A DNA stretch of 64,000 nt from Paraphysomonas bandaiensis (Eukaryota > Protista > Chrysophyceae). This document shows positions 3,011 to 64,000 of this stretch, piece by piece (position 1 is the first letter of the stretch; each line of letters begins with the position of its first letter). Below the pieces are notes generated by a model that saw only the letters and a program-made list of their open reading frames with translations, had not been told where the DNA came from and did not search any database. The translations under genes were made by a program, and so were the position numbers. Location of the stretch: the NCBI GenBank assembly GCA_965644295.1, contig CBFFRP010000433.1, positions 62,001-126,000 on the forward strand. Direction: 5' to 3'.

Positions 3011-3052
3011 ACGATCTTAATCATCTGAAAATGGTCTTTAGTCAATATAAAC

Positions 3053-3235
3053 GTCTTTTTATTTAGCAATAGGCGTTAGAAACCTGTACCAATATAGTGG
3101 TTAGTTGAATGCTAGTCATGCTAGTTAGACCTCTACCCATAACTAATCCGTACAAATTCCATTATCCTACTATTTAACGCTACAGAAGCTGCTTGTGCGT
3201 CGCCGCAAGCACCAAGGTGCAACCACTTCCGTTCT
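3053..3235 (-). mobile_element. Diverged copy of the non-LTR retrotransposon 3' UTR
   Basis: Aligns by eye to 44098-44279; 3186-3235 is identical to 44230-44279, and the left half is more diverged. No clear TSD. Confidence 0.9.
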
Positions 3236-26482: not shown

Positions 26483-26690
26483 TCTAGTGATATGATCAAT
26501 GGGTTCTAGTGAGAGATGGTTAATGAGAGATTATGTATGGTAGATTGAGGGGTATGTAGAGGGTGAAGAGAGTGGAGGGTGATTAGAGTCATAGGAGGGT
26601 TAGTAGGATGAGAGAGAAAGCAAAGAGGACTGCTGTTGCAGTTGATTGGTAGACATACTGACCTGTGCACACTTCATACTTACACACTTG

Positions 26691-42679: not shown

Positions 42680-42817
42680 CTAAGAGTGACCACAGAAAGA
42701 GCAGTGAATGGGCAGTGTTTTTTGAAACTGGCATCAAGAATTTGTATACCGCGGCCCAACAATGTCTTGACATATTATTCTGCCAGCGAAATTTACAGCA
42801 GCATATATGTTATGATA

Positions 42818-42994
42818 GTGAATGTCTGATTATTTAGCAATAGGCGTTGAGACCTTGCATCAATTAGTGGCTAGAAGAATGCTAGTCATACTAGTTAGAC
42901 CACTACCCGTAACTAATCAATACAAACTCTTTTATCCTACTATTTAACGCTACGAAAGCTGCTTGTGCGTCGCCGCAAGCACCAAGGTGCAACC
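42818..42994 (-). mobile_element. 177-bp 5'-truncated retroposed copy of the LINE 3' end with 14-bp TSD
   Basis: Nearly identical to 44092-44268 (two differences seen). TATATGTTATGATA occurs at 42804-42817 and 42995-43008. Confidence 0.95.
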
Positions 42995-43021: not shown

Positions 43022-43318
43022 AGTAGTGAATGTCTTATTATTAGGAGTAGTCGCGTAAGAGTCAGAACCAATTCAGTATTGCAATTAAACTAACTAGTGC
43101 TTCAAACTGATCCTAATATTTAGCACTACGAAAGCTCCAAGGTGAAACCACTTCCGCTCTATTCCGCTCTATCACTAAAAACAACAAATGCCTGTTTATT
43201 CGTCAGACCCTCAGCTTAGTCGGACTCGCACCATTTCGTGGTGTTCTGGGGATAAGTACCGGAGATAACTTTCTGCCTACTCATAGCCAAAAAAGCTCTT
43301 TTGGTACAAGGGACACTA
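43022..43318 (-). mobile_element. Candidate SINE: head with A/B-box-like motifs plus a tail related to the LINE 3' UTR
   Basis: The tail shares GTAGTGAATGTCT.ATTATT, CTACGAAAGCT and CCAAGGTG.AACCACTTCCG.TCT with the LINE 3' UTR. The minus-strand head has TGGCTATGAGTAGG (43289-43276) and GGTGCGAGTCC (43232-43222). The head is repeated at 30803-30930. Confidence 0.55.
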
Positions 43319-44088
43319 GTAAATATCATTTGTGTAGAATAAACAGACATCCGGGATATTGGGCTGTCTGCTTAAGTCAAGCATCCGGGATGAGTTCACC
43401 TTAAAGACTCAAAACTCCTGAAGCCAGCAGACGTCATGGACATCGACATTCTGCTTGCTCTCTGCGTTTGCTTTGAGTGATTAATGCCGACTATAAGTTA
43501 ACATTACTGGCATCTGTGAGTGGCCAATGGCAAAAATGTGAATAGACCTGTTATGTCTTCCCACATGTCTACTGCCTAGTCTTGGTTTATCCTGATCCAC
43601 CAGGTTATTGAGATATTATGAAGGCTCTGGTACTGTTCTCCAAGCAATGTCAGGTATATTTATGGTGTTTTTATGCTATTATTGCATATAGTAGGTTTTC
43701 ATTGAGCGGAGGTGCATGTCAGGACCTCCTCTACTCTTCAGACTACCAGACACCACCTTGAAGGCCCTAAAGATCTGCTGCGTATATACAGGAGACTTAT
43801 ATATTATATGTCGAAAAGACACGGACCGCAATATTTTAGTGTTAGAACAAGTAGATTGGGCAGGAGCGTATGATCCAGCCTGAACACGCAACTCGTTGTA
43901 TGCACATCCATGTAGGTAACTATCGTAAAGGTATAGTTGTATAGTTGAGCAGATACATGCAATATAGTAACTAGATGAGAGTCATGTTTGTTAGTAGGTT
44001 GGTAACGCACAAAACTACACACTTCTTAAAAACCAGATACTCAATATCTATAGGTCAAGACTATATAGATTGTACAAAGCCACAAGGA

Positions 44089-47000
44089 GTAGTGAATGTC
44101 TGATTATTTAGCAATAGGCGTTGAGACCTTGCAGCAATTAGTGGCTAGAAGAATGCTAGTCATACTAGTTAGACCACTACCCGTAACTAATCAATACAAA
44201 CTCTTTTATCCTACTATTTAACGCTACGAAAGCTGCTTGTGCGTCGCCGCAAGCACCAAGGTGCAACCACTTCCGTTCTTTTGTGTGATATGAAATTCGC
44301 CTTTATCGTGTGTCCGTGGACTCACCGGCGCTATTGATCTGGGGGTCTCCCTTTGGGATGGGTCTCCATTGGTGTTGGAGGGGGCTCAGCGTTCTGGATT
44401 AGGGTCCTGAGTGCACCTAGTTCCAGATGTGTGGGTTGAGAGTGGTGGGGATTGTTGGGAGGAGGAGTTGGGTTTGTAGTCTGTGTTACTGTGCTCCTGT
44501 GGGGCCGCGGGTGTAGATAGAGTTGTCGAAGCCGTCGGCGTTGTGGAGGTCTGGGCAGTCCAGTGCTCTGTCGGGTAGGACCTGTGAGGTGTGCACGTGT
44601 GTCTGGAGTCGGGGACGCTGTGGGGGGTCTTCGTTGGACCCCTAGTAGTCGAAGTACTCTCGGACGTTGTCTTGACTGACTGCGTTTCGGACGGGGTCTC
44701 GGGAGTAGCCTGGGCGGCCTTTTGGACATGGTGATATAGCGACAACCGCGATCCTGTAGCATAAGCTTCGCTGCAGTGTAAAGCGGTTGCAGGAGATTAA
44801 TAACCGCTGTTTCTAGGTTCCGTAGACTGTGTGCCGTCAGGTGGTTGTGTATGGCATCTTCGAAGACCGTTTCCAGTTGGGCTGCTGTGATGGTTCCAGT
44901 CCAGTATCTCTCGACCTGTGGGATGGAGGGATTCCAGGCTCTGCTGGAGAGTCTCCGTAGTGCAGATGTGATCCAGTTGGGTAAGGTCTGAGTTCTCTGT
45001 ATTTCGTGGAGCACATTTTTATGCGATTGAAATGCAGTTTCCCTTATTTGGGTGATGGATTCATGTGTGCAGTCGAGGCACATATGTTTTAGGGAATCTA
45101 GTCGAAACCCGCAGTCAGAGCATGCGGCTTTGGTCAGGTCAAGCCCCTGTTTGGTTTTGGCCCGGTTCCTCCCTATGCAGAAAGATTTGTCCCATGTCAG
45201 TGCCGTGTTGAGTATTCTTTGGCGTAGATTTGAGCTGAGTTTGTCTTTGGATGCACTGCCATCCGCTTGAGCTAGTTTGCGCGGGAGGTGTACTCCGCTA
45301 TTGGTCCAGTAGCCAGGCGCTCGATCAGGATTGTGTCCGTAGCGTTGATCTCTGGTTGAAGTGTAGTTCTCAAGTGTCCTTAGGTCGCAGAGATCCTGGA
45401 AATTAGTAAGGAGTGGGCTAGAGTAGTATGGCCGTCTTGTACTGTGCATACGCCAGTGCCATAATCCAGCAGTTAGTAAGCGTTCGATGGCACTGTCAAT
45501 CGCAATTGTGCAGACAGTGTAGTTATTTTTTCCAAGGATGCGATCGACTTCATGCCAGTCTTCACCCGCAACTGCGTCCGCAATATAGATGCCCTTGTCC
45601 TCAAACGTCCACTCCGTTTCATCTGTGGTACGTCGTTCGGGATGAGACCTCACCCAGGTCACCTGTCGTTTGCAATCTCTGCTGGCTGCGATGCTTTCGA
45701 GTAGTACCCCTTTTGCACGGTGACCGAGAGCTCTGCGTCTTGTGGAGAGTGCTTCCTCAGTGCGGGTGCACACTGCCTGACAGTCTGTGTGGCTTCTTAT
45801 GTGTTCGGGAATACGTGTTGAGAGTATAAGCCCCATGGCTGTGCCTATGAGTTCATATGCGTATGAGTCCAAACCGGGCACGTCACGAAAGGGTGTATCT
45901 AGTCGTAGTATTGTGGTTGTACCATCTTCCCAGGCATTTTCTGGGGGTAAGTAGACGACCGCTGCACCTCCTCGGTGTGTCCATCGGGTTCGCGGATTGA
46001 CATGAGTGAGGCGACGAGTGGAGAGCGCACTGGCTGTGTATGATCCATCTGTGAAGATAGCCTTGAAAGTATCTGGTTGGACACTATTAAGGCCGAGTTC
46101 TTGTTTTAGGTTGGTCAGCATGTGTTCATCCTGTGGTTCGGGGGGCTCAGGTTCCTGAAGGGTAAGGCCCAATTCCGTTCCCCATTCCCTGAGGCTGAGA
46201 ACATAGTGGTGGTATTGGGGCTGTGGCTCTGTTGTCTGAGTGAGTAGAAAATGTGCTGCTTGACCTGCTTCTCCTCCGAGGGTTATTGCGCGCTGTAGAG
46301 ATCCCCATTTTTGCTCCTGCGCTGAGTCTGAGAAACGTTTCATACCTAATCCGTTGTGCTTGAGTGAGAGGTAGATCAGTTCCGTGGGGTATCCAGGGCC
46401 TAGACTGAGGGCCTTTCTGTAGAGGGTTGCGCAAGCAGCGTCAATTTCTCTGTACCAGTGTAGCGGCCATGAGGCTTTGGTGGCTCTATAGAGCAAAGTC
46501 GGTATGATTTGGGTCTCGATAACCATGACTATACAGCCGGCTGAGGCCTGTTTGATCCCTAGGTGTGTGGTCACGACTTTCAGGTATTTTAGACACCAGT
46601 CATGGGAGGCCTTGTCTGTGATTGTGAGAGGAAGGTCTGCTCCGAGGTAATGTATCGACTCTAGTGATGTTTGGATAGGGACTGGGTGTGGGCGCCATGA
46701 CCAGTCGTAGAGAATGATGTAGCCAATGGGGTCGGAGGCCTTGTTGGAATCCTGTAGGATCGGAAACACTGTGCAAACTACTTTGGGGATAGAGAGTTCC
46801 ATTCCCGAAAGTACGCAGAACGCAGATATTTGTTGGGCAATGAGTTGGGCAGCGTGTATGGATTTAGCTATTGTGTTAAGATCATCCGCGAAGGAGATCT
46901 TTATTTCGCCTGTAGTCGGAGTCGTGAGTTGAATAGTTGGTAACGTTGGACTCGTTGTTGACAGTTCAATGTCCAGCCACGTGAGAAGGATGTCGTAGAG

Positions 47001-50000
47001 TGCCACCCAGGCGCATGTGGATTCTGTGCCCCCTTGGGTGATACCCCTTTCGGCTTCGAAACCCAGACTGAATAGTGCAATGAAGTGGCCGTCTGCGGAC
47101 AGGAGGTCAAGGAGAGAACGTGGCTCTATGTTGTTTGCCATGAATGGTGTCCAGGGAAATGTTAGACCTCCGGCATCTAAGTTGCCAAACCAGTCAACTA
47201 CATCGTCCGGAACGCCCAGTCGTGCCCACGCGAGACGCATGAGGTTAGGCGCAATTGAGTCGAAGGCCTTCTTGAAGTCCCAGAGTGTACATATATGCTG
47301 GTCGCCTTTTCGTCTTGCTTCTTCTGCAGCCGCGAGTACCCGTAGTATCGCTGTGTCCGTCCCGTTCCTCCAGCGATAACCATGCTGGGACGGATGCAAA
47401 ACTTTCTGTTCCTCCCATACGGTAAGAATTCTATGAGTGATTATCCTTGTTAATATTTTCCTACTGACTTCAAGCAGACCAATCGGTCGGAGATTAGTGA
47501 GGGAGGATTCTCCTGGTTTCTTGAGAATGGGAGACATTACCCTGTCTCTCCACCAAATGGGCACATGTTTATGTTTCCAGAGAGATCTGGTGAGGATGTA
47601 AGCCTCTCGCTGAACTACCGGTGGCCAGGATTTGACCATGTTGGAGGAGACCATTGAGGGTCCAGGCGCGCGGTTGAAGGAGAGAGAGTGAAGTGTGCAA
47701 TAGAATTCATCCTGGGTGATGTCTTTTGCAAGAGTAGATTTGAGTGTGGCTGCCATGGCCGGAGTGGTCTTGGTACAAAGGGCCCGTCGTAACCCCAGTT
47801 GCAGGGGAAGAGGAATTTTCGAGCGGGGGTGGAGTGGTTCCTGGCATGTCGCTGAGCCCGGATCAAGAAGTGATTTCCACCATGTAGGGTCATCCTGGAG
47901 CTGTTGTGCTACAGGGTCAAGTCCAGGAGGTTTGGCATGATGCTCACGGAAGTGCGCATTAATGCCTTCATGAATGTCTTGCGGCGTTGTGAGGATGTGT
48001 CCGTCCGTTGTTTTCACCGTGGTAAGTCGGAGTAGTGTTTTGACCTTGAGACCAATTTTCTGAAGAATTGCTTGAAGTCTTTTCTGCTGTAGCAGTGCCT
48101 CCATCTGCTTGGTGCGAGCCGTGAGTCTAGTCCGCATTTCTGTCCTGGCTCTTCCATGAAGAAGTCCTCTCAGTCGCAAGGCAATTCGGAGAAGGTTTTT
48201 CTTGGTGGCTTGCTTTGCGTTCCAACCCAGGATTACTCGTGGGTCCGCGTTGCGGTGGCTGCACCAGAAGTTGATGTCCGATATGCCTTTGATGTGACCC
48301 TGAGAACTCCTGAGATAGGAGTCCCATCGGGCGAACCATGCAGTGATGATTTCGTGGGTGGGGGTGGTTGCCGGGGGGCCGCGCCATCCATGCCGTTTGT
48401 ATCCAGCAGAATTGAACATCTTTTGGATAATCCGCAAAACCATGAGCATTCCTTCCTGTATTACTCTCATTTCCGGGGAAAAGCCATTCTTGAACTTTGA
48501 GCGTGTGCGCTGACAACGTTCGTGTAGGCGTGTGCTATGTGTACATGCAGGACGCTTCGCCTCAAGCGAAGCCTGGAGGGTTATGTGATGGATGGCCGCT
48601 AGTCTGTTGGCTGCCACCTCAGGAGGGAGTATGGCAGTCGATCCGTTGTCTAAATGTGGTAGTTGTGCATGAAGTTGGAGGAGTCTTGCGGTGTATGCCT
48701 GTACTTCCTTGGAGTCCTTCGGGTTTACATTGAGACGGGGGGGGATTCGGAGGTGCGACTCCGGTGGTCGAGGGTCAAGATTGACTGGTACGGTGAAACC
48801 GACCCAGACCGGTCGATGATCGAAGGCTGCTGCGAGTAATGAGGAGGAGTCAAGGCAGCCAGTGTCCGTAACAGACATGTTCGGAGGTAACGGCGTGTGT
48901 AGAATATGATCGATCCGCGATATTCCTTTGTCTAATCTGTGGAAGGTATGATATGTTTTCCTGGGTAGGAGAAGCTCATGGAGTGGTGCAGCCAGTTGGA
49001 GTTTGTCGGCAAGTGGTCGTATGTCTCTGCCTTTAGGATTTGTCTCCATGGAGCCATTGAAGTCGCCGGCGACAATGACAGTATGGTCCTTGGCTCTGGC
49101 TTTAGTGACCCATTTCGTAAGGATGTTGCATAGGAGCTTGTAGGGGTCAGCAGTACAGATACCACGGGACGCTCTCCCTAGCTTGGTCAATTTGCTCCAT
49201 AATGTGCAAGTGCCTGGCGTGGATGGCTTCGGGGGTAGATAGACGCTTATTAGTACTAGGGTGTGCGCCACCGACGTTTTGAACTCTAGTCGGCTCACTA
49301 AACCAAGTCCCGTAAAGTCAGCCTTTGTGAAGGCGAGACGGCGCTTCCAGTATTCGCTGATTATGACTACTGTACCCCCCATTAGTGGGTCTCTTGAAGT
49401 CAGTTTTGGCTGCTTGCTGAGGAAGAGGCATATTCTTGTTCCCTGGAGTGCATCTTCGATGATACGCGTGAAGAAGTTGGCCTGAGTTTCTGTTAGACGG
49501 ACATCCTGTAATAGGAGCACGTCCAATTTTTGCCGCTTAAAGTGTCGGATGATAGCTTGGGCTTTACCTGTGTGTGATGCCGGATTGCCATTTGTGTTCC
49601 ATGTGGAGAGTCGGAGTCCCATGGCTGCTCCCGAGGGATCCTTGGGGATGCTGCTGGAGGTCTCTGTAGGAGTTCCACTCTTGTCTGCAAGGAGTCTGTC
49701 CCATACTGCTATATTGGCACCGCCTATGTCGCTGTCGTACGCAGCCCTGGCTTGGATTAATATCCCAAGTGGCCAGCGTTGATCACACCAATAATGATGT
49801 CCGTAGTTGATGAGAAGTTCTTCATCCTTAGCAATGGAACGTATTGTACGGACATAGAGGCGTTTATTTTTCGTGACAAACTTGACATTAGCCATGTTTG
49901 TGGCTAGGGGGTCATTAATATACCCAGCTTCGCATGTTACACATTGTCGGACTTGGTCAAAGCCATCTATTGCGAAGGTACCAGTACTGTCTTGAACTAT

Positions 50001-52788
50001 GTAATCAGAACGCCTTGTAGACTGACTCATCTTTGTTAGTGGATAGCGTTTGCCTTTGTACTCAGCAATGATGACGTCTGCTGGGAATGTGTTCTTCGCA
50101 TAAAGGGATAGTCCTTTGGCAGTGTTATCGGCGTACGCAATGTAGAACTTTCTTGACCAGTCCCTGTCCCAGCCGGTGGTATCTAGTGCTGGAGTTGGTC
50201 TGATCGTTCGTGTGGTCGTGGTTGGGTGTGAGTTGTGAAGGTTCGTTGGTTGGTCACTTTCATCATAATTTACGACCTTTTTGGCTTTCCGGGTTGGCTG
50301 GCATCGACTTGTCAACGCAGTTTGGGCGTGTTTCAACTGCATCTTCTTGTGCGATGGTAGTGCTCCAGGGGTTGAAGCCTGCAGAATCTGTCGATTTGTT
50401 CGTGCTAACTTGGTGCTGCTTGACGAGGTTGTTCTGGTGCTGGTCATCTTTGATGTCCTATTGTTGTTCGTGATTGAGTCCGCGGGAAGTGTAGGTGGAG
50501 CGATGGGGTCAGCCGTTGAGAGTATACTGGTGGCCAAGGTGTTTTCAAGAGATAGTAGGGCGTTGTCTAGGGCAGTAGAAAGACCGGCAGGGTCTAAGAG
50601 GAAGTAGTGAGCATCTTGTAGTATGACATGGTAGTAGTTATCACGAATAGCGTCCCTAAGTTCGTCCACCTTCCATGCGATGTTATAAGCTACTTTGTCA
50701 GTAGGGATGCCTACAATGCTGAGGTAATTACCATTTTGCGCCCACGTCGTGCAGGGGTTGATAGTAGAGGCTAAAAGGTGGACCTCTCGCACTGAGAGCC
50801 AGTGAGTTATGTCGTCTTCCGTAGTGTATGTTGTTTTGGTAGGTATTAAAAGTGCGGCCTGTGCGTGATCTAACTTATGTCGTAGTGGCTGAAGTGTGTG
50901 ATGGGCCATGCACTCCCGTTGCATTATGTCGAACGCTTGGGTGCCTAATGTATTTATGAAAGATGCTAGCGTGTGACGGTCCTTGCGTTGTTTGAGGTCT
51001 AATTTCAGACAGGAGCGAGTGTGTCGCCTGCTTGAAGCAAGAATGTGCAGATGATAGAGTGTGCTGTATGCGCAGTACCCATCACTAGGGATATGTTGTT
51101 GTGTGCGAAGGGCTGAGGGTCTGAGGGTGAGGCGGTAGACTCTGCTCATGTCGCACATATGGAGCCTGAGTTGTCGACGGTCCGTGGGGTTCATCTGTCG
51201 TAGTTGACGTCGAGCTCTCGGTGACAAGGAGACTGCAATTACTTCCCTCTGTTCCTGTTGCTCTCTGTGCTCATGTATCATAGGTGGTACAGTTGACGGC
51301 TCAGAAGTCCAGAGGATGTTGGTGCTCTGTCTGGAGGTCTGGTGTTGTAGAAAACAGGATAGCCGCTCCTGAGTCCGTGTTAGAGCGTGCATGATGCAGG
51401 TGGGGATATTTGTTGCATTGAGTATGTGAAACCCATGCTGGCTGCGTATGATGTCATGGGTTACCACAGTGTTGGTAGAAGCGTGCACTGTTAGTGCCTG
51501 TCTGGAGAATGGTGACAGCTGTGCCCAACCAGGCGCCAGGTGCGGTTGAACAGCGTCCCATAGTCTGTATGGTATGGAGAGAAGATCGAGTAGCAGTTGG
51601 AAATCCTCCGTGTCTAGATGTAGTCCTGTGTGTGGAGTCGAGGATTCATATTGCATGAGTGTCTTACGGAGACTAACAGTGGCTGTTGAGGGAATACCCT
51701 TTGTCAGGCAAAGGGTCCGCACATGCCTAGATACAACATGAGTGGAGTCTGCCCAGGGTTTGTTGCCATTCGCGAGATGCTGGGCAACTAGTAGGGCGCT
51801 GTGCGTGGTATCCAATTTGTGCTCTGGTAGCGTGAATGATATCATGAGATCATAGTTGTCCGTCCTGGAAGCCTTGGCTATGAATCCTTCCCATATGTCT
51901 GTACAGGCAGGGGATAGCATGTGTGCATATATTTCTTTTAAAAGGTTTCCCTGTGGGGAGGCAGCAATGGTTTGGGTTTCATCATATCTAACCCAGTTGT
52001 TCAGCAGATCGGAGTGAAAGGGCGTGTGACCCCAGCCCTCTGTGTAGTGTCGGGGGTGTGTGGCAATGTCCTTGGGCAGTGCATCCGGCCTGATGTCAGG
52101 AGTGGTAGTGGAGTGTGAGGATGGGCCGTCTGGGGCTAATGCTGGAGTTCCCATGGTGTTCAGTTGAGTAGGGTTGGTGGTAGGTGGCCTCCGTTTGACT
52201 GGGAAATAGTCAAATAGAGTTGCATACGGTGTGGTGGCATCCTTAGTGGGTAAGGGTAATGTGTGGGTGGATTTGCTGGGTCCGTCACCGCTGTTATCGG
52301 AAGAGAATTCCTTCCCCTGAAGGGCGTGGGAGGGATGGTTGATGGACCTGGCACGATGGACTCCTTGCATTCCCTTGGAATGATATTGCAACACATTTTG
52401 GAGACGCATGATGACGAGGTCAGGAATTCTCTCGAGTAGCGCGTGTAGTTCCAACTCCACCGGGTATTTGGTGTCCAGGAAGAAGTGGTCGTTGGAGCAA
52501 AACACATCATAAGATGGAAGGGATTGAGTTTGTGGAAGGAAGGAGGAATGGTGGGTAGACCAGTACGCCCAGTTGTGGCCAAGGTCCACTGGTGAATCTT
52601 GCCAGATACGAATTCGTATACTCAGGGTTTCTGCCAGGAGGGCTATGATGTCTGTGTAGCCCCATTGCTCTGGGGGTATTCCGACAGCAGTTGGTCGTTT
52701 GCGGCGTAGTGCTTTGTTGTACGTTGTTAGCTGCTGTCGGAGCTTCTTCCGGATGAATGCAAAGTTCAGCATCTTGGCTTCAGCGAGC
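44089..52788 (-). mobile_element. Non-LTR retrotransposon (APE-RT-RNase H type), 5'-truncated, 8.7 kb, 12-bp TSD
   Basis: AAGCCACAAGGA occurs at 44077-44088 and 52789-52800. There is a sharp GC-content shift at the boundaries. The 242-nt 3' UTR ends ...CAGACATTCACTAC. Confidence 0.96.
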
Positions 52789-52790
52789 AA
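44331..52790 (-). CDS. Retrotransposon polyprotein (>2800 aa, N-terminus truncated): OTU-like repeats - SET - APE endonuclease - RT - RNase H - CCHC knuckle
   Basis: OTU-like IPSDGYC..W..E..LLA..DAHYF (~51110-50590). SET: KGLSLYAK..IIAEYKG..DG..GYINDP..NVKF..IAKDEELLINYG..YW (~50150-49788). APE: STWNTNG, LLLQD, SVYLPP, AGDFN, SRIDHI, FDHRPV (~49615-48790). RT: LRPIGLLE, QHGYR, DFKKAFDSI, GITQG, FADDL, YLG (~47680-46620). RNase H: FTDGS, AYELIG, HTDCQ, WVRSH, IADAVA (~46065-45560). CSDC-x8-H-x4-C (~45123-45068). Confidence 0.95.
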   Translation of the reverse strand: MLAEAKMLNFAFIRKKLRQQLTTYNKALRRKRPTAVGIPPEQWGYTDIIALLAETLSIRIRIWQDSPVDLGHNWAYWSTHHSSFLPQTQSLPSYDVFCSNDHFFLDTKYPVELELHALLERIPDLVIMRLQNVLQYHSKGMQGVHRARSINHPSHALQGKEFSSDNSGDGPSKSTHTLPLPTKDATTPYATLFDYFPVKRRPPTTNPTQLNTMGTPALAPDGPSSHSTTTPDIRPDALPKDIATHPRHYTEGWGHTPFHSDLLNNWVRYDETQTIAASPQGNLLKEIYAHMLSPACTDIWEGFIAKASRTDNYDLMISFTLPEHKLDTTHSALLVAQHLANGNKPWADSTHVVSRHVRTLCLTKGIPSTATVSLRKTLMQYESSTPHTGLHLDTEDFQLLLDLLSIPYRLWDAVQPHLAPGWAQLSPFSRQALTVHASTNTVVTHDIIRSQHGFHILNATNIPTCIMHALTRTQERLSCFLQHQTSRQSTNILWTSEPSTVPPMIHEHREQQEQREVIAVSLSPRARRQLRQMNPTDRRQLRLHMCDMSRVYRLTLRPSALRTQQHIPSDGYCAYSTLYHLHILASSRRHTRSCLKLDLKQRKDRHTLASFINTLGTQAFDIMQRECMAHHTLQPLRHKLDHAQAALLIPTKTTYTTEDDITHWLSVREVHLLASTINPCTTWAQNGNYLSIVGIPTDKVAYNIAWKVDELRDAIRDNYYHVILQDAHYFLLDPAGLSTALDNALLSLENTLATSILSTADPIAPPTLPADSITNNNRTSKMTSTRTTSSSSTKLARTNRQILQASTPGALPSHKKMQLKHAQTALTSRCQPTRKAKKVVNYDESDQPTNLHNSHPTTTTRTIRPTPALDTTGWDRDWSRKFYIAYADNTAKGLSLYAKNTFPADVIIAEYKGKRYPLTKMSQSTRRSDYIVQDSTGTFAIDGFDQVRQCVTCEAGYINDPLATNMANVKFVTKNKRLYVRTIRSIAKDEELLINYGHHYWCDQRWPLGILIQARAAYDSDIGGANIAVWDRLLADKSGTPTETSSSIPKDPSGAAMGLRLSTWNTNGNPASHTGKAQAIIRHFKRQKLDVLLLQDVRLTETQANFFTRIIEDALQGTRICLFLSKQPKLTSRDPLMGGTVVIISEYWKRRLAFTKADFTGLGLVSRLEFKTSVAHTLVLISVYLPPKPSTPGTCTLWSKLTKLGRASRGICTADPYKLLCNILTKWVTKARAKDHTVIVAGDFNGSMETNPKGRDIRPLADKLQLAAPLHELLLPRKTYHTFHRLDKGISRIDHILHTPLPPNMSVTDTGCLDSSSLLAAAFDHRPVWVGFTVPVNLDPRPPESHLRIPPRLNVNPKDSKEVQAYTARLLQLHAQLPHLDNGSTAILPPEVAANRLAAIHHITLQASLEAKRPACTHSTRLHERCQRTRSKFKNGFSPEMRVIQEGMLMVLRIIQKMFNSAGYKRHGWRGPPATTPTHEIITAWFARWDSYLRSSQGHIKGISDINFWCSHRNADPRVILGWNAKQATKKNLLRIALRLRGLLHGRARTEMRTRLTARTKQMEALLQQKRLQAILQKIGLKVKTLLRLTTVKTTDGHILTTPQDIHEGINAHFREHHAKPPGLDPVAQQLQDDPTWWKSLLDPGSATCQEPLHPRSKIPLPLQLGLRRALCTKTTPAMAATLKSTLAKDITQDEFYCTLHSLSFNRAPGPSMVSSNMVKSWPPVVQREAYILTRSLWKHKHVPIWWRDRVMSPILKKPGESSLTNLRPIGLLEVSRKILTRIITHRILTVWEEQKVLHPSQHGYRWRNGTDTAILRVLAAAEEARRKGDQHICTLWDFKKAFDSIAPNLMRLAWARLGVPDDVVDWFGNLDAGGLTFPWTPFMANNIEPRSLLDLLSADGHFIALFSLGFEAERGITQGGTESTCAWVALYDILLTWLDIELSTTSPTLPTIQLTTPTTGEIKISFADDLNTIAKSIHAAQLIAQQISAFCVLSGMELSIPKVVCTVFPILQDSNKASDPIGYIILYDWSWRPHPVPIQTSLESIHYLGADLPLTITDKASHDWCLKYLKVVTTHLGIKQASAGCIVMVIETQIIPTLLYRATKASWPLHWYREIDAACATLYRKALSLGPGYPTELIYLSLKHNGLGMKRFSDSAQEQKWGSLQRAITLGGEAGQAAHFLLTQTTEPQPQYHHYVLSLREWGTELGLTLQEPEPPEPQDEHMLTNLKQELGLNSVQPDTFKAIFTDGSYTASALSTRRLTHVNPRTRWTHRGGAAVVYLPPENAWEDGTTTILRLDTPFRDVPGLDSYAYELIGTAMGLILSTRIPEHIRSHTDCQAVCTRTEEALSTRRRALGHRAKGVLLESIAASRDCKRQVTWVRSHPERRTTDETEWTFEDKGIYIADAVAGEDWHEVDRILGKNNYTVCTIAIDSAIERLLTAGLWHWRMHSTRRPYYSSPLLTNFQDLCDLRTLENYTSTRDQRYGHNPDRAPGYWTNSGVHLPRKLAQADGSASKDKLSSNLRQRILNTALTWDKSFCIGRNRAKTKQGLDLTKAACSDCGFRLDSLKHMCLDCTHESITQIRETAFQSHKNVLHEIQRTQTLPNWITSALRRLSSRAWNPSIPQVERYWTGTITAAQLETVFEDAIHNHLTAHSLRNLETAVINLLQPLYTAAKLMLQDRGCRYITMSKRPPRLLPRPRPKRSQSRQRPRVLRLLGVQRRPPTASPTPDTRAHLTGPTRQSTGLPRPPQRRRLRQLYLHPRPHRSTVTQTTNPTPPPNNPHHSQPTHLELGALRTLIQNAEPPPTPMETHPKGRPPDQ

Positions 52791-53135
52791 GCCACAAGGA
52801 TATTAAACCAAGACAATAAGTCGAGGTAATACCAAAACCTGGTGAAATGTATGAAATCTAGTGAAATTTTTGATGATGGTTGGAAAAGGGTATAACTATG
52901 AATAATAAATATATATCAGCCCCCAAGCAATATCTAATAATATGAATTATTTCTTTGCATGTATGAATTTGACAACTACTATTCAATTCTCTGAAAGACG
53001 ATGCCTCACAGCTGACACGGTGAAGTTTCCATATATCACATATTCCTTTTCTCTATCTGGAGGAAGAGAGGGTACTGCCATGTAGATATGATACTATTAC
53101 GATACCGCAATAGTTATGGAGTTGCTGACACTTAC

Positions 53136-53168
53136 ACGCCTATTGCTAATAATCAGACATTCAGTACT
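53136..53168 (+). repeat. Short fragment of the LINE-family 3' terminus in the opposite orientation
   Basis: CACGCCTATTGCTAATAATCAGACATTCAGTAC matches the reverse complement of 44089-44121 with few changes. Confidence 0.7.
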
Positions 53169-53491
53169 AGTTGTGGAGTAGTATACTGTTGTACTGTTTT
53201 AGCGTACAGACAATTCAGTTTGTTGGTACAGTATAATGAGGAAGGTATATGAAAATGTGTGTTATTTATAACCTATACTGTTTCAGGCTGTGTAGCAGTT
53301 GTTGCATAAGTTTATTGAACAAGCTCGCATGCTAAAACCTCATCAGCACAAAGAGAATACAATTGTGACCAACTGTAGCATGCAGAAATGTAGAACTACA
53401 AGCAACCCTTCACAGTAAAATTACTATCTCGAATTACAAACCAACTATACGCAAACAATATTGACTATATGACAAATGTTGGGACAGCACA

Positions 53492-56400
53492 TCACTTAGT
53501 CTTTCCGTGTCTTCCCTTCGCCTTCCCTGTCTTTTTAGAAGACACGGAAGATTTACGTGTCTTCGTCAACCCCTTCCTGCTGCCTTTCTTTTTGTATGTC
53601 TTCGTCTTTTTCGAAGAAGAACGGGTTGAAATTTTTTTAGATTGTGAGTCCGATTTCTTATTATTTAAGGAAGGGTTAGAAAGTTTGGATTGTCGATGTT
53701 TTTTCTTCCTTTTATCAGACATTGAGGCCTTTGATGCTGTTGGATACAGCGTGGGCAGAGAACCAGGCAACGGTGATGTCGGAAAAACAGTGGGGGAGTA
53801 CGAAGGAACAGAAGAAAAAACAGTCGAGGGGGCTGTGCTCGGCAAATTTAGAGCGGGAATCGTCGGCCGTAAACTTGGAGAAACATTCGGCTGGAGAATT
53901 GGCCCAGGGCGATGTGATCTTTTCTTTCTAAAATCTTTTCTACGTTTCCAAGCCTTTCCTTTCTTCTTTCGAGGTCTTGAAGTTCGATAACGTTTCTTTC
54001 TTGTTGACGCCAAAGTAGGTTGTGATACAGCAGCACTTGGGTTCAAACTTGGAAATTGACTCGGAATATCTAAAAACGGAAGTGTAGGGCGAAATGTAGA
54101 AGGTACCAATGACGACGGTGAAAGTGTCGGAACTGTTGAGGGTATTGAAGTGGGTAGCGATGTCGGGATTGAGGTTGGAAGAGATGTCGGGATTACAGTG
54201 GGTAGAGATGTGGGTAGAGATGTCGGGAATGACGTTGGTACGGACGTAGGATTCGATGTTGGAATGGAAGTAGGATTCGATGTCGGAGGGCTAGTAGGTA
54301 TCGAAGTGGGTAGCGATGTGGGGATTACGGTGGGAAGAGATGTGGGTAGAGAAGTTGGTATCGATGTGGGTAGCGATGTTGGAATTGATGTCGGTACGGT
54401 GGTAGGATTCGATGTCGGGAATGAGGTGGGAAGAGATGTGGGTAGAGAAGTTGGTATCGATGTGGGTACAGATGTCGGAAATGAAGTAGGAAAAGATGTC
54501 GGTAAGCTGGTTGGCACCGATGTAGGTAGAGATGTCGGGATAGAGGTGGGAGGAGACGTAGGGAGACTGGTAGGTATTGAAGTGGGTAGCGATGTCGGAA
54601 TTGAGGTTGGAAGAGATGTCGGGATTACAGTGGGAAGAGTTGTGGGTAGAGATGTCGGGATTGACGTTGGTACGGACGAAGGATTCGATGTTGGAATGGA
54701 AGTAGGATTCGATGTCGGAGTGCTAGTAGGTATTGAGGTGGGTATCGTTGTCGAAATTGATGTGGGAAGAGATGTCGGGAATGAGGTAGGCAGAGATGTG
54801 GGTAGAGATGTCGGGATTGACGTTGGTACGGACGTAGGATTCGATGTCGGAGGGCTAGTAGGTATCGAAGTGGGTAGCGATGTGGGCATTACGGTGGGAA
54901 GAGATGTGGGTAGAGAAGTTGGTATCGATGTGGGTACAGATGTCGGAAATGAAGTGGGAAGAGATGTCGGTAAGCTGGTTGGCACCGATGTAGGTAGAGA
55001 TGTCGGGATAGAGGTGGGAGGAGATGTAGGGAGACTGGTAGGTATTGAAGTGGGTAGCGATGTCGGAATTGAGGTTGGAAGAGATGTCGGGATTACAGTG
55101 GGTAGAGATGTGGGAAAAGATGTCGGGATTACAGTGGGTAGAGACGTGGGAAGAGATGTGGGAAGCGATATCGGGATTACAGTGGGTAGAGATGTGGGTA
55201 GAGATGTCGGAAATGACGTTGGTACGGACGTAGGATTCGATGTTGGAATGGAAGTAGGATTCGATGTCGGAGGGCTAGTAGGTATCGAAGTGGGTAGAGG
55301 TGTGGGGATTACGGTGGGAAGAGATGTGGGTAGAGAAGTTGGTATCGATGTGGGAAGCGATGTTGGAAATGAAGTGGGTAGAGATGTCGGTAAGCTGGTT
55401 GGTACCGATGTAGGTAGAGATTTCGGGATAGAGGTGGGAGGAGACGTAGGAAGACTGGTAGGTATTGAAGTGGGTAGCGATGTCGGAATTGAGGTTGGAA
55501 GAGATGTCGGGATTACAGTAGGTAGAGATGTGGGTAGAGATGTCGGGAATGACGTTGGTACGGACGTAGGATTCGATGTCGGAGGGCTAGTAGGTATCGA
55601 AGTGGGTAGCGATGTGGGGATTACGGTGGGAAGAGATGTGGGTAGAGAAGTTGGTATCGATGTTGGAATTGATGTCGGTACGGTGGTAGGATTCAATGTC
55701 GGGAATGAGGTGGGAAGAGATGTGGGTAGAGAAGTTGGTATCGATGTGGGTACAGATGTCGGAAATGAAGTGGGAAGAGATGTCGGTAAGCTGGTTGGTA
55801 CCGATGTAGGTAGAGATGTCGGGATAGAGGTGGGAGGAGATGTAGGGAGACTGGTAGGTATTGAAGTGGGTAGCGATGTCGGGATTGATGTGGGAAGAGA
55901 TGTCGGGATTACAGTGGGTAGAGATGTGGGTAGAGATGTCGGGATTGACGTTGGTACGGACGTAGGATTCGATGTTGGAATGGAAGTAGGATTCGATGTC
56001 GGAGGGCTAGTAGGTATCGAAGTGGGTAGCGATGTGGGGATTACGGTGGGAAGAGATGTGGGTAGAGAAGTTGGTATCAATGTGGGAAGCGATGTTGGAA
56101 TTGATGTCGGTACGGTGGTAGGATTCGATGTCGGGAATGAGGTGGGAAGAGATGTGGGTAGAGAAGTTGGTATCGATGTGGGTACAGATGTCGGAAATGA
56201 AGTGGGAAGAGATATCGGTAAGCTGGTTGGTACCGATGTAGGTAGAGATGTCGGGATAGAGGTGGGAGGAGATGTAGGGAGACTGGTAGGTATTGAAGTG
56301 GGTAGCGATGTCGGAATTGAGGTTGGAAGAGATGTCGGGATTACAGTGGGTAGAGATGTGGGTAGAGATGTCGGGATTGACGTTGGTACGGACGTAGGAT

Positions 56401-59400
56401 TCGATGTTGGAATGGAAGTAGGATTCGATGTCGGAGAGCTAGTAGGTATCGAAGTGGGTAGCGATGTGGGGATTACGGTGGGAAGAGATGTGGGTAGAGA
56501 AGTTGGTATCGATGTGGGAAGCGATGTTGGAATTGATGTCGGTACGGTGGTAGGGTTCGATGTCGGGAATGAGGTGGGAAGAGATGTGGGTAGAGAAGTT
56601 GGTATCGATGAGGGTACAGATGTCGGAAATGAAGTGGGAAGAGATGTCGGTAAGCTGGTTGGTACCGATGTAGGTAGAGATGTCGGGATAGAGGTGGGAG
56701 GAGACGTAGGGAGACTGGTAGGTCTTGAAGTGGGTAGCGATGTCGGAATTGAGGTTGGAAGAGATGTCGGGATTACAGTAGGTAGAGATGTGGGAAGAGA
56801 TGACGGGATTACAGTGGGTAGAGATGTCGGGATTGACGTCAGTACGGACGTAGGATTCGATGTCGGGAATGAGGTGGGAAGAGATGTGGGTAGAGAAGTT
56901 GGTATCGATGTGGGTACAGATGTCGGAAATGAAGTGGGAAGAGATGTCGGTAAGCTGGTTGGTACCGATGTAGGTAGAGATGTCGGGATAGAGGTGGGAG
57001 GAGATGTAGGGAGACTGGTAGGTATTGAAGTGGGTAGCGATGTCGGAATTGAGGTTGGAAGAGATGTCGGGATTACAGTGGGTAGAGATGTCGGGATTGA
57101 CGTCGGTACGGACGTAGGATTCGATGTTGGAATGGAAGTAGGATTCGATGTCGGAGGGCTAGTAGGTATCGAAGTGGGTAGCGATGTGGGGATTACGGTG
57201 GGAAGAGATGTGGGTAGAGAAGTTGGTATCGATGTGGGAAGCGATGTTGGAATTGATGTCGGTACGGTGGTAGGATTCGATGTCGGGAATGAGGTGGGAA
57301 GAGATGTGGGTAGAGAAGTTGGTATCGATGTGGGTACAGATGTCGGAAATGAAGTGGGAAGAGATGTCGGTAAGCTGGTTGGCACCGATGTAGGTAGAGA
57401 TGTCGGGATAGAGGTGGGAGGAGACGTAGGGAGACTGGTAGGTCTTGAAGTGGGTAGCGATGTCGGAATTGAGGTTGGAAGAGATGTCGGGATTACAGTG
57501 GGTAGAGATGTCGGGATTGACGTCGGTACGGACGTAGGATTCGATGTCGGGAATGAGGTGGGAAGAGATGTGGGTAGAGAAGTTGGTATCGATGTGGGTA
57601 CAGATGTCGGAAATGAAGTGGGAAGAGATGTCGGTAAGCTGGTTGGTACCGATGTAGGTAGAGATGTCGGGATAGAGGTGGGAGGAGATGTAGGGAGACT
57701 GGTAGGTATTGAAGTGGGTAGCGATGTCGGGATTGATGTGGGAAGAGATGTCGGGATTACAGTGGGTAGAGATGTGGGTAGAGATGTCGGGATTGACGTT
57801 GGTACGGACGTAGGATTCGATGTTGGAATGGAAGTAGGATTCGATGTCGGAGGGCTAGTAGGTATCGAAGTGGGTAGCGATGTGGGGATTACGGTGGGAA
57901 GAGATGTGGGTAGAGAAGTTGGTATCGATGTGGGAAGCGATGTTGGAATTGATGTCGGTACGGTGGTAGGATTCGATGTCGGGAATGAGGTGGGAAGAGA
58001 TGTGGGTAGAGAAGTTGGTATCGATGTGGGTACAGATGTCGGAAATGAAGTGGGAAGAGATGTCGGTAAGCTGGTTGGTACCGATGTAGGTAGAGATGTC
58101 GGGATAGAGGTGGGAGGAGATGTAGGGAGACTGGTAGGTATTGAAGTGGGTAGCGATGTCGGGATTGATGTGGGAAGAGATGTCGGGATTACAGTGGGTA
58201 GAGATGTGGGTAGAGATGTCGGGATTGACGTTGGTACGGACGTAGGATTCGATGTTGGAATGGAAGTAGGATTCGATGTCGGAGGGCTAGTAGGTATCGA
58301 AGTGGGTAGCGATGTGGGGATTACGGTGGGAAGAGATGTGGGTAGAGAAGTTGGTATCGATGTGGGAAGCGATGTTGGAATTGATGTCGGTACGGTGGTA
58401 GGATTCGATGTCGGGAATGAGGTGGGAAGAGATGTGGGTAGAGAAGTTGGTATCGATGTGGGTACAGATGTCGGAAATGAAGTGGGAAGAGATGTCGGTA
58501 AGCTGGTTGGCACCGATGTAGGTAGAGATGTCGGGATAGAGGTGGGAGGAGACGTAGGGAGACTGGTAGGTCTTGAAGTGGGTAGCGATGTCGGAATTGA
58601 GGTTGGAAGAGATGTCGGGATTACAGTGGGTAGAGATGTCGGGATTGACGTCGGTACGGACGTAGGATTCGATGTCGGGAATGAGGTGGGAAGAGATGTG
58701 GGTAGAGAAGTTGGTATCGATGTGGGTACAGATGTCGGAAATGAAGTGGGAAGAGATGTCGGTAAGCTGGTTGGTACCGATGTAGGTAGAGATGTCGGGA
58801 TAGAGGTTGGAGGAGACGTAGGGAGACTGGTAGGTATTGAAGTGGGTAGCGATGTCGGGATTACAGTAGGTAGAGATGTGGGAAGAGATGTCGGGATTGA
58901 CGTCGGTACAGACGTAGGATTCGATGTCGGGAATGAGGTGGGAAGAGATGTGGGTAGAGAAGTAGGTATCGATGTGGGAAGCGATGTTGGAATTAATGTC
59001 GGTACAGACGTAGGATTCGATGTCGGGAATGAGGTGGGAAGAGATGTGGGTAGAGAAGTTGGTATCGATGTGGGTACAGATGTCGGAAATGAAGTGGGAA
59101 GAGATGTCGGTAAGCTGGTTGGTACCGATGTAGGTAGAGATGTCGGGATAGAGGTTGGAGGAGATGTAGGGAGACTGGTAGGTATTGAAGTGGGTAGCGA
59201 TGTCGGAATTGAGGTTGGAAGAGATGTCGGGATTACAGTAGGTAGAGATGTGGGAAGAGATGTCGGGATTGACGTCGGTACAGACGTAGGATTCGATGTC
59301 GGGAATGAGGTGGGAAGAGATGTGGGTAGAGAAGTTGGTATCGATGTGGGTACAGATGTCGGAAATGAAGTGGGAAGAGATGTCGGTAAGCTGGTTGGTA

Positions 59401-62400: not shown

Positions 62401-62443
62401 CTACTAAACAGCCCAAAATTACAAAGACCTTGAAACCTATCAT
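53492..62443 (-). CDS. Giant secreted mucin-like PT-repeat protein (about 2983 aa) with Lys/Arg-rich termini
   Basis: ATG at 62443 gives the signal-peptide-like [19 protein letters not shown], followed by RKKRxPP heptads, about 7.6 kb of PT[S/V/T][L/I/F/N/V/P] tetrapeptides and an S/K/R-rich C-terminus. No introns or stops. Confidence 0.88.
54140..61810. repeat. Coding 12-bp-unit tandem array with higher-order repeats
   Basis: Units such as GATGTGGGTAGA and GATGTCGGGATT. Identical 60-nt lines at 59581, 59881 and 60181 give a 300-bp period; a 432-bp offset is seen between 57721 and 58153. Confidence 0.97.
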
Positions 62444-64000
62444 GGTCACTATGATATTTAACAACAAAAACAGATGAAACAGACTTTTAAAACATATACA
62501 ATTATGAAACCTGATATCACAATGATATTTACTATGGATATAATATATATTATAATGTATCATCGAACAAATCAAAAGAGTATTTGACTTATTCAATGAT
62601 GCCCTGATAGCTCTTGTATATTGTTATGAGTTACAATACCCCTTATATCCATTGATACATCTTGATAGCTTTAACAATATCCATAAGCTTAACAGCTAAA
62701 CATATATATGATCCCTATCAGTCCTCTCTATTATTAACTTACAAATATATGAGATATATAGATAAGGTTTGTTAAGGTACACTACATACATTATGATACA
62801 TCTACTATACCGTATCGGCAGTCAGCATCTTATTTTTTCGGTAATAAAATGAAGCAAATATACTCTATATAACTGCAGTATATATATGGCTGTAATACAC
62901 ATAATTGTTATCTCAATATTAGAGGCATCTTTGAAGGATGCCGATACGACTGCTGTGCTGATTTGCTGATATATGAGCCAAAAATCTTGGAATTTTGACC
63001 AATTCTATAGGAATTGGGATTTTGAGTGTATTTATCTAAATTTACATCCGGCAACGTACTGGAATTTGGACATTTTTTTCGGGGTTTTGGCATTGATAAA
63101 TAGCCTATTTTTATGTGATTTCAAAAGTTGTCAGTACAAGGTGTTGATCTTAACACTCTGCCAATGGATGCACGTAGATATCAACCGTCTGGAATATGTA
63201 AATGTATAAATTGGAATGCGAGCTATGTTGTAACGAGATCATTTCACGTGAATTGTTCGTTGTTCGATATTGGATGTTTACACATGGGTACACTCTGGTT
63301 TTGGAATGTGATACTACTACAGACGATACGGAGCTTTGACCTGAACACAATAGCCTGCTCTCTACACTTTCTAATCAACTTTTCCTGCTGAAATTTGGAA
63401 TGACGTTTTAGAAATGAAGTGCTGCTGTGACATACTCGAGCTCTTCTGTGCAACACAGAGTAAATATCGGATGACCGCAGATAATGGAGCACGGGACTCT
63501 CCCAACAGTCGTAAGGATTGTAACACAAGTAATTAAGCATTTTGAATAGTTTATTTGTAGTGATAGGAAGTTCCGGAGTGGAGCTGGCTTGCACTCTTGC
63601 TTTTTTACTATTTTATTTAAGATCATCGCAACATATTGCGTGAAGTTTATAACGTTGTTACTTCGTAATATTATATTGTATCTTAATCTTACAGTAGTTA
63701 CAGTCTTAAAAAGGGATAGAGTTTAGTATTTAATTAGAAGAGACCCTTAGATGTACGATGTAGTATATCATTATCATTGTTACTTCGGTGGGAAACTAAA
63801 TTTCAGTGTGCACAAGAAATCTTATCCCACTCACTCAGGAGAGAAAGGCGTTGAATCGATTGGTGTCGTAGAAGTTACACATCTATTAAGTGTAATTTAT
63901 TATTTCTCTCCTGTTAAGCTGGCGGTGATTGGATTGTGTTATCGCTCGAAACTGGCGAGAGATACAGTAATGATGACGAAAGTAATCTATTTAAAAATAA

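Follow-up and report, generated by a model that had tools for sequence, protein, structure and literature searches.

We identified, in a 64,000-nucleotide stretch of DNA from Paraphysomonas bandaiensis (the window, to which all positions refer), a copy of an APE-type non-LTR (LINE) retrotransposon whose single giant ORF places Cys/His repeats and a SET domain in front of the endonuclease and reverse transcriptase (RT). The copy is assigned at the level of APE-type LINEs and not to a named clade. With a probability of about 0.8, it represents an autonomous LINE family of a marine protist in which one polyprotein runs from the Cys/His repeats through SET, APE, RT and an RNase H-like domain to a CCHC knuckle. 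The features of the element are:

44089..52788, minus strand: whole retrotransposon copy, probably 5′-truncated; 8,700 bp with an exact 12-nt TSD at both ends
52789..52800, no strand: TSD on the 5′ side of the element, AAGCCACAAGGA on the plus strand, read directly
44077..44088, no strand: TSD on the 3′ side, AAGCCACAAGGA, read directly, abutting the element end
44331..52790, minus strand: single uninterrupted ORF of 2,819 codons, open up to the 5′ junction
52446..52790, minus strand: repeat 1, C-terminal half only (residues 1-115), with W and NDHFF (His at residue 102); cysteine half missing
51366..51998, minus strand: repeat 2 (residues 265-475), with Q-G-N-L-L at the cysteine motif and the His motif QHGFH
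50556..51125, minus strand: repeat 3, intact (residues 556-745), IPSDGYCAYSTLYHL ... DAHYFLLD; OTU-like by motif only
49671..50165, minus strand: predicted SET/PR-type lysine methyltransferase domain with a conserved C-terminal helical extension (residues 876-1040)
48891..49604, minus strand: APE endonuclease (residues 1063-1300), Pfam Exo_endo_phos, E 1e-9
46641..47522, minus strand: reverse transcriptase (residues 1757-2050) with FADD motif, Pfam RVT_1, E 1e-14
45471..46073, minus strand: probable RNase H-like domain (residues 2240-2440), motif support
45069..45122, minus strand: CCHC zinc knuckle (residues 2557-2574), C-x2-C-x8-H-x4-C
44089..44330, minus strand: 3′ UTR, terminus ...CAGACATTCACTAC, without poly(A)

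An exact 12-nt TSD is expected by chance about 1e-4 times within 50 nt of each end (our estimate), and no terminal repeats (LTR or TIR) were found for the element. The first ATG of the ORF is codon 7, at 52772. Since the ORF remains open to the 5′ junction, repeat 1 lacks its cysteine half and the relatives carry some 400-500 extra residues N-terminal of SET (1,240-1,385 compared with 875), the window copy is probably 5′-truncated inside repeat 1, with its ORF nevertheless intact. No full-length copy of the exact subfamily was recovered. The original prediction, a non-LTR retrotransposon bounded by a TSD and encoding more than 2,800 amino acids in one unbroken ORF, is borne out by the TSD, the APE and RT domains and the 5′-truncated copies described below; its treatment of the copy as complete is not, given the open 5′ end and the halved repeat.

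The 3′ terminus of the element, ...AATAATCAGACATTCACTAC, is common to four further 5′-truncated fragments in the window, one of which has its own TSD:

42816..42994, minus strand: separate, heavily 5′-truncated family copy, 179 nt, 99.4% identical to the 3′ end; own TSD of roughly 12 nt, TCATAACATATA
43022..43230, minus strand: 3′-end fragment of a more divergent member with the same terminus
53100..53167, plus strand: short 3′-end fragment in the opposite orientation, last 33 nt 94% identical
3050..3235, minus strand: 3′-end fragment, 88% identical over 187 nt

A 12-bp TSD together with 5′-truncated copies that share one 3′ end is the pattern left by target-primed reverse transcription. Copies were also found beyond the window: L001 carries two stop codons, L003 is cut short at residue 74 and also shows an internal deletion, and P0139, which represents 22 member sequences, is 99% identical over residues 1718-2819. 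Mobility is indicated by the TSDs and by the copies that are truncated or carry stops, and the family has been recently active.

Pfam matches for SET, APE and RVT_1 were counted above the curated cut-offs, and the predicted order of APE and RT after SET was recovered in this way. The best PDB sequence match of the RT was human LINE-1 ORF2p (E 2e-7). For the RNase H-like region, D..E..D..H are invariant in an alignment with six relatives, and the relative P0135 matches Pfam RNase_H at E 8e-4, below the cut-off; the window piece gave no Pfam or PDB match. The predicted RNase H is thus upheld by its motif residues and not by a domain match. The CCHC knuckle, also part of the original prediction, has motif support only; its residues C117, C120, H129 and C134 (alignment numbering) are invariant among five relatives. 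In the same five-relative alignment no PD-(D/E)xK endonuclease is conserved after the knuckle, where only R, P and W are invariant, in agreement with the earlier view that the element is not a typical Dualen.

The SET domain was detected in the window ORF by Pfam at residues 893-997 (E 2e-8; score 34.8 bits, cut-off 22.4). An AlphaFold model of the region reached a pLDDT of 87.5, and its best Foldseek matches were SET7/9, MLL3/4, PRDM1 and SETD8 (E about 3e-8, probability 1.0). From this model the region is predicted to have a SET fold, and the SET assignment of the original prediction stands. To assess selection, we compared the window element with L011, a 71% identical subfamily, and obtained pN/pS values of 0.20/0.70 for SET, 0.18/0.77 for APE and 0.14/0.75 for RT. 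By these values, purifying selection constrains SET as strongly as it does APE.

N-terminal to SET, the window ORF contains three tandem repeats of a type marked by the motif I-P-x-x-G-Y-C-A-Y, followed about 160-180 residues on by H-F/Y. A profile built from repeat 2 matches repeat 1 at residues 48-89 (iE 1e-11), so that the two are homologous; the Cys of repeat 2 has apparently been lost. Over residues 350-556, the repeat 2 region, P0003 is 50% identical to the window ORF. Repeat 3 is homologous to P0004/L009 (about 45% identity) and to repeat 3 of the relative P0133. In P0133 all three repeats are complete: their G-Y-C motifs lie at residues 291, 670 and 999, and the corresponding His motifs at 473, 844 and 1164. 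W and H are invariant in an alignment of eight repeats. Of the six repeats present in full, five have both the Cys and the His motif: repeat 3 of the window, the one in L009 and all three of P0133. Between these three lineages, identity is 20-45%. No G-Y-C motif was found in P0136. OTU proteases show a Cys-loop (D/x-G-x-C-aromatic) and, about 120-180 residues later, a His-loop (H-Y/F); the order of Cys and His in the repeats fits OTU or papain-like proteases. With Pfam, no OTU or other protease match to the repeats was obtained for the window ORF at E up to 1, and no OTU match for P0133 and P0136 at E up to 0.1. NCBIfam and PHROGs gave no match to the repeats, and a PDB profile search with them found no OTU. 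An AlphaFold model of the repeat from a three-sequence alignment had a pLDDT of 43.6 and is unusable, which makes Foldseek matches on it meaningless. The predicted tandem OTU-like repeats are therefore present as three repeats with Cys/His motifs, while their assignment to OTU is unconfirmed by profile or fold methods.

Because SET and cysteine-protease-like modules are fused to the endonuclease and RT, it seems that the element brings along protein-modifying enzymes of its own. The SET domain would travel with the retrotransposition complex and methylate a lysine residue; its substrate would be a nucleosomal histone at the insertion site or close to it, or else a protein of the host or the element. 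As putative papain-fold (OTU-motif) cysteine proteases, the Cys/His repeats would divide the polyprotein of roughly 3,000 residues into its functional units or strip ubiquitin-like modifiers. That this protist LINE clade possesses a built-in working lysine methyltransferase and ubiquitin-type cysteine proteases which modify chromatin or host proteins at the integration site is a tentative reading, with the odds against it. It is purely speculative that ubiquitin removal and lysine methylation might serve to license insertion or to evade silencing, as was originally proposed. If true, the element would mark, protect or hide its new copies with a retrotransposon-encoded 'writer plus eraser' pair, in parallel to retrotransposons that carry a DNA methyltransferase.

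There is a substantial chance, if short of even, that the Cys/His repeats are leader-type proteases which cut the polyprotein downstream of themselves, rather than deubiquitinases acting on host chromatin or defence. Arteriviruses have tandem papain-like leader proteases of this self-processing kind. The ORFs of 2,800-3,400 residues with up to three tandem copies N-terminal to the enzymes speak for such a role, as does the fast divergence of the repeats, which keep only Cys, W and His. In addition, P0137, a distant LINE-like protein, begins with a ubiquitin domain; host hydrolases would cleave after ubiquitin, which hints at N-terminal processing. On the other hand, neither cleavage sites nor a protease fold were identified. 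Self-processing and deubiquitination are not mutually exclusive, since viral OTU-type proteases often do both.

It seems rather unlikely that the repeats are non-enzymatic, forming a fast-evolving binding or scaffold region that, for example, stands in for the absent ORF1-type RNA chaperone, while Cys and His play structural roles. The lack of HMM, PDB or fold support, the lost Cys in repeat 2 of the window and the absence of a recognisable G-Y-C motif in P0136 would be in line with this. However, the constant spacing of the motif in five of six full repeats from three such divergent lineages argues against a scaffold, and the order of Cys and His and the flanking residues match the Cys-loop/His-loop pattern of OTU proteases.

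With regard to the methyltransferase part of the proposed function, all members of the element SET family have I-N-D where classical SET enzymes have the N-H cofactor-binding motif, and activity is therefore not assured. In Pfam, PRDM2_PR also matches the SET region of the window (E 3e-4), and several PR domains are without clear activity. The domain might accordingly be a pseudo-enzyme that binds or targets, for instance by docking on histone tails, and writes no methylation. We find this doubtful, as GxG, YxG and the Tyr of E-E-L..Y-G are kept in the family, the modelled SET fold is complete with SET7/9 and MLL as nearest structures, and purifying selection equals that on APE.

The domain arrangement itself recurs outside the window. 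On an independent contig, L001 is 98.7% identical and collinear through repeat 3, SET, APE and RT, and SET lies directly N-terminal to APE in eight relatives of 31-71% identity: P0144/L011 (71%), P0133/L006 and P0136/L007 (both about 34%, full length), P0009/L004 (33%, one frame from SET through RT), P0005, P0021, P0025 and P0060. Taken together, the alignments indicate that SET belongs integrally to the polyprotein and has been conserved by purifying selection in relatives down to about 31% identity, and that the upstream Cys/His repeats are likewise integral, conserved parts of the polyprotein. The original claim that the extra domains belong to the element and not to a neighbouring host gene was confirmed by the collinear contig, the relatives and the selection on SET; a one-off chimera or misassembly is ruled out, as the SET region is kept in L001 and in all eight divergent relatives. 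A once-captured host gene fragment, an assembly artefact or a domesticated, immobile host gene comprising the whole ORF is thus highly improbable: a full-length search with the N-terminal region gave no match and related sequences are mostly short metagenome fragments, but the collinear contig, the SET-APE junction shared by the relatives, the selection on SET and the marks of mobility contradict all three.

Histone methylation and ubiquitin-dependent silencing are normally directed against mobile elements. The finding that a LINE lineage retains SET under selection equal to that on its endonuclease, and does so down to about 31% identity, suggests that proteins are modified by the element itself in the course of insertion or afterwards. 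The family offers a defined system open to testing, since its SET domain is compact, its Cys/His module is conserved and some of its copies were active recently, and it opens the question of whether retrotransposons manipulate chromatin from inside, as has been proposed for those carrying DNA methyltransferases.

Compared with known APE-type LINEs that have an RNase H and a C-terminal knuckle (L1, I and Tad1-like), the window element has the same order of APE, RT, RNase H-like domain and knuckle; TSD length (about 12 bp), the conserved 3′ end and the frequent loss of 5′ sequence are shared as well. In contrast to these LINEs, no separate ORF1 was seen in its family, whose single ORF spans about 3,000 residues and carries about 900-1,400 residues, SET and Cys/His repeats, before APE; the window element also lacks a poly(A) tail. 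Dualen/RandI elements are outlined as LINEs of protists and algae whose single giant ORF encodes APE, RT, RNase H and a knuckle (Kojima and Fujiwara 2005, as cited in PMC9977147). In its giant single ORF with these four domains the window element resembles them. Dualen/RandI also carry a cysteine protease; a SET domain is not known from Dualen. Membership in Dualen was rejected because the second, restriction-like PD-(D/E)xK endonuclease is absent, none being conserved after the knuckle.

NeSL LINEs carry an Ulp1 protease. In Ginger1 transposases, a ubiquitin/SUMO-type cysteine protease (OTU or Ulp1) is fused to the transposition enzyme (PMC2836005). Both contain a single HMM-recognisable protease, whereas the window family has up to three divergent repeats that are recognised by no HMM. 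A literature search, with Repbase outside its scope, found no published account of a LINE that carries SET. A survey of 172 genomes counted TE-SET fusion gene models (bioRxiv 10.1101/2021.11.30.470311), and the text consulted describes no LINE family with a conserved SET-APE-RT layout.

The combination of SET and an OTU-like protease is known from Helentrons and the proto-Helentron of Phytophthora, which have a SET-domain gene, OTU-like cysteine protease genes and an APE-type endonuclease (PMC4067079). There, as in the window family with its putative protease repeats, such an accessory pair travels with a mobile element. Helentrons, however, are rolling-circle DNA transposons with Rep/helicase and separate SET and OTU ORFs, whereas the window element has an in-frame fusion to RT; with no Rep/helicase domain found in the window ORF by Pfam, membership was rejected. 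Ulp1-SET proteins were also found in our analysis. That SET and a cysteine protease are likewise paired in mobile elements unrelated to the window family (Helentrons and the Ulp1-SET proteins) hints at a functional cassette that recurs. Finally, DNMT has been described in retrotransposons of dinoflagellates and charophytes (PMC5890265) and MBD in arthropod Copia (PMC6673714). These retrotransposons differ from the window family in domain and element class, but share with it a host-type epigenetic module held under selection.

The open reading frame (ORF) of the element, 2,819 codons without interruption, cannot be a chance product at about 50% G+C. An exact 12-nt direct repeat (AAGCCACAAGGA) directly abuts both ends, and the element therefore spans 44089-52788 (8,700 bp). 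Its 3′ UTR comprises 242 nt and terminates in ...AATAATCAGACATTCACTAC without a poly(A) tail; no terminal repeats, direct or inverted, were found in the element. The Pfam matches to the lysine-methyltransferase (SET), endonuclease (APE) and reverse transcriptase (RT) domains were all above the curated cut-offs.

Features of the element. Residue numbers refer to the ORF.
44331-52790, minus strand: element ORF
44077-44088 and 52789-52800: direct repeat, target-site duplication (TSD)
Residues 893-997: SET, Pfam E 2e-8; the PR-domain model matches more weakly
Residues 1063-1300: Exo_endo_phos (APE), Pfam E 1e-9
Residues 1757-2050: RVT_1 (RT), Pfam E 1e-14
Residues 2557-2574: CCHC knuckle, C-x2-C-x8-H-x4-C, invariant

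SET belongs to the element, as the original prediction had concluded from its position inside the TSD and in one intron-free frame with APE and RT. Four lines of evidence were obtained: a collinear contig, a sister subfamily, distant relatives and selection. L001, an independent contig from ENA, aligns collinearly with window positions 50947-47113 (98.7% identity, zero indels) and covers the third of the tandem Cys/His repeats upstream of SET as well as SET, APE and RT. The order SET, APE, RT is unchanged in a sister subfamily with 71% protein identity (P0144 on contig L011), and SET still lies immediately ahead of APE in relatives at about 31-34% identity. Two near full-length relatives, P0133 on contig L006 (3,392 residues) and P0136 on contig L007 (2,472 residues and another 696 in a shifted frame), carry SET, APE and RT by Pfam. 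On contig L004 a single frame runs from SET through RT, and the SET-APE junction is also spanned by the proteins P0005, P0021, P0025 and P0060. In P0150, a more distant LINE (24% identity), no SET match was observed within 284 residues ahead of APE. In the comparison of the window copy with L011, pS has reached saturation (0.70-0.79) and pN is low, with values of 0.20 for SET, 0.18 for APE, 0.18 for the APE-RT linker and 0.14 for RT. SET is therefore under purifying selection, with a constraint similar in strength to that on APE. From the near-identical L001 the window copy differs synonymously at 26 codons and non-synonymously at 24 (pN/pS 0.29), and L001 contains two stop codons, which is the picture of diverging LINE copies. 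A chimera or misassembly was rejected because L001 is collinear and divergent relatives share the SET-APE order, and a domesticated host gene because of the TSDs, the truncated copies and the stop-bearing L001. The finding is real, and the structural interpretation first given to it is mostly right.

Among solved structures, human LINE-1 ORF2p was the top match to the RT region. Downstream of RT, D..E..D..H is invariant in an alignment of the window ORF with five relatives. Pfam RNase_H matched the relative P0135 with an E of 8e-4, under the cut-off, and the RNase H-like region of the window ORF gave no Pfam match and no PDB profile match; RNase H is for these reasons probable in the element, not proven. 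In its core enzymes the element corresponds to the APE-type LINEs that have RNase H and a knuckle. After the knuckle, no PD-(D/E)xK-like endonuclease motif is conserved. Dualen elements are defined by a second, restriction-like endonuclease (as cited in PMC9977147). Membership in this group was rejected since the defining feature is absent after the knuckle, in agreement with the earlier view that the element is not a typical Dualen.

The tandem repeats upstream of SET are real. They were missed by blastp self-comparison and detected by iterated profiles, a profile from repeat 2 matching repeat 1 with an iE of 1e-11. P0133 carries three complete repeats, with P-x-K-G-Y-C at its residues 291, 670 and 999 and H-F/Y at 473, 844 and 1164. 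In the window ORF, repeat 3 is intact (IPSDGYCAYSTLYHL at 571, DAHYFLLD at 728), repeat 2 has Q-G-N-L-L at the expected cysteine position and repeat 1 consists of the C-terminal half only. Contig L009 (about 45% identical) carries IPANGYCAYGTLYRLH and the HYF motif, and one W and the His are invariant among eight aligned repeat halves. In OTU proteases the Cys-loop comes first and the His-loop later, whereas in Ulp1 the His is ahead of the Cys. In the repeats the Cys is followed by the His 160-180 residues on; this order and the residues flanking the Cys appear to fit the OTU loop pattern, not Ulp1. No OTU or other match for the repeats was found in Pfam, NCBIfam and PHROGs gave zero matches with four N-terminal regions, and a PDB profile search with the repeats gave no match. 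The AlphaFold model of repeat 3 from a 3-sequence alignment reached a pLDDT of 43.6, and the fold search was uninformative. With the N-terminal 1,040 residues of the ORF as query no full-length homologue was found, and two metagenome scans with repeat 3 alignments returned pattern matches, with zero confirmed relatives. Thus, of the tandem OTU-like repeats originally described, the repeats are present and the OTU identity, absent from Pfam, NCBIfam, PHROGs and PDB profiles, is unconfirmed; 'Cys/His repeats, OTU-like by motif' is the description we use. We propose that they act as cysteine proteases that would process the giant polyprotein or strip ubiquitin-like modifiers. That they process the polyprotein, with no part in deubiquitination, is a tentative alternative at somewhat less than even odds, and it is unlikely that they are non-enzymatic.

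The AlphaFold model of SET, built from an 88-sequence alignment, was confident (pLDDT 87.5, pTM 0.81). A Foldseek search with this model against the PDB returned SET7/9, MLL3/MLL4, PRDM1, SETD8 and PRDM3 (E about 3e-8, probability 1.0). The SET family conserves GxG, YxG and E-E-L..Y-G..Y-W as well as a helical extension (R-W..I-L..A..A-Y). At the position of N-H in classical SET enzymes it carries I-N-D, and because of this replacement catalytic competence is likely but not assured. SET would accompany the retrotransposition complex and methylate a lysine of chromatin or of a protein partner; that it is a binding module only seems doubtful. The OTU label and the functions proposed for SET and the repeats are hypotheses. 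The same SET family is fused to Ulp1 (Peptidase_C48) in the metagenome proteins P0046 (L008:381-4409), P0096 and P0113, a second cysteine-protease and SET pairing in another context. P0046 has three matched Ulp1 stretches, and downstream in L008 there is neither APE nor RT. P0027 and P0067, related proteins that share 47% identity, have SET after a segment that resembles RNase H and is homologous to ORF residues 2313-2574, the opposite order to the window element. A tree of 75 SET domains was weakly resolved and does not separate a single from multiple origins of LINE-linked SETs.

The element family is mobile, and recently so. Four further 3′-end fragments lie in the window, all with the same terminus.

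3′-end fragments in the window.
42816-42994: 179 nt at 99.4% identity; a separate TSD of roughly 12 nt (TCATAACATATA)
43022-43230: fragment
3050-3235: 88% identical
53136-53167: on the strand opposite to the element

The protein P0139, which represents 22 member sequences, is 99% identical over residues 1718-2819. Short TSDs and 5′-truncated copies with one common 3′ end are the pattern left by target-primed reverse transcription. Target sequences are similar at two independent 3′ ends (44073-44108 and 53148-53183), reading CCACAAGGA|GTAGTG and CCACAACTA|GTACTG on the plus strand. This may reflect a target-site preference or, with two cases only, chance.

The window copy, originally treated as complete, is probably not, because its ORF is open to the TSD (the first ATG is codon 7), repeat 1 is without its cysteine half and relatives are longer before SET (1,240-1,385 residues vs 875). 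Truncation at the 5′ end is common in the family: the first residue present is 74 in L003, which also shows an internal deletion with 12-nt microhomology, and 350 in P0003, where the preceding sequence looks non-coding; L011 begins shortly ahead of SET. The L003 copy (783-1377; JGI sample 3300018983) has been reduced by deletion to about 0.6 kb: it lacks window 52270 to 44436, with a 12-nt junction overlap, and keeps the 3′ end; over its last 134 nt the contig matches window 42861-42994 at 100% identity. In the full-length relative on L006 (2-659) the annotated start is preceded by 103 open codons in frame, and a same-frame ORF (2-349) lies beyond a single stop; the start may be further upstream, or there may be a separate upstream ORF.

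The window genes around the element are compact and ordinary eukaryotic ones (a kinase, a Myb protein, D123, an RPAP3-like protein and a Copia-type RT), and Rfam gave no matches in the window. One window ORF occurs in a protein collection with JGI/IMG, MMETSP and EukProt as sources, which identifies the host as a marine protist, not human. The Copia-type retrotransposon ORF lies near the left window end (32-2560, plus strand; RVT_2 E 4e-53, retroviral SH3-like domain). Adjoining the element is a 3,034-codon ORF (53492-62596, minus strand) with a signal-peptide-like start, roughly 600 tandem x-P-T-S tetrapeptides (array 54141-61678, 12-nt period, plus-strand GC skew about 0.7) and K/R-rich termini with motifs such as RLPPRKKR. 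Its predicted product resembles a secreted protein of giant size, of mucin-like or cell-wall type, and the opposite strand, open for 2,502 codons, is a by-product of the repeat. A (CATA)n microsatellite (26675-27159, about 121 units, 98% purity) produces artefactual ORFs across both strands. Among relatives, P0140 (780 residues, APE and RT) shows 49% identity to ORF residues 1196-1941. Its NCBI label is 'MAG: Nitrospiraceae bacterium'; the sequence almost certainly comes from a eukaryotic LINE contig that was assigned to a bacterial genome by a binning error. P0137 (2,326 aa; from NCBI and JGI) is distantly related through its RT (25% identity). It starts with a ubiquitin domain, linking a retroelement to the ubiquitin system, and has an unusual layout with RNase H (1275-1427) ahead of RT (1519-1738).

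Searches of the published literature found no paper on a SET-APE-RT LINE. A survey of 172 genomes included a count of SET-TE fusion gene models, and its available text describes no such LINE family (bioRxiv 10.1101/2021.11.30.470311). A SET-bearing LINE is of interest to transposon and chromatin biologists. Ginger1 transposases are fused to OTU or Ulp1 domains (PMC2836005). The closest precedent for the pair of SET and protease is provided by Helentrons and the Phytophthora proto-Helentron, in which, however, the SET gene and the OTU-like protease genes are separate ORFs (PMC4067079). Retrotransposons that carry a DNMT (PMC5890265) or an MBD (PMC6673714) are conceptual parallels to the SET-bearing LINE.
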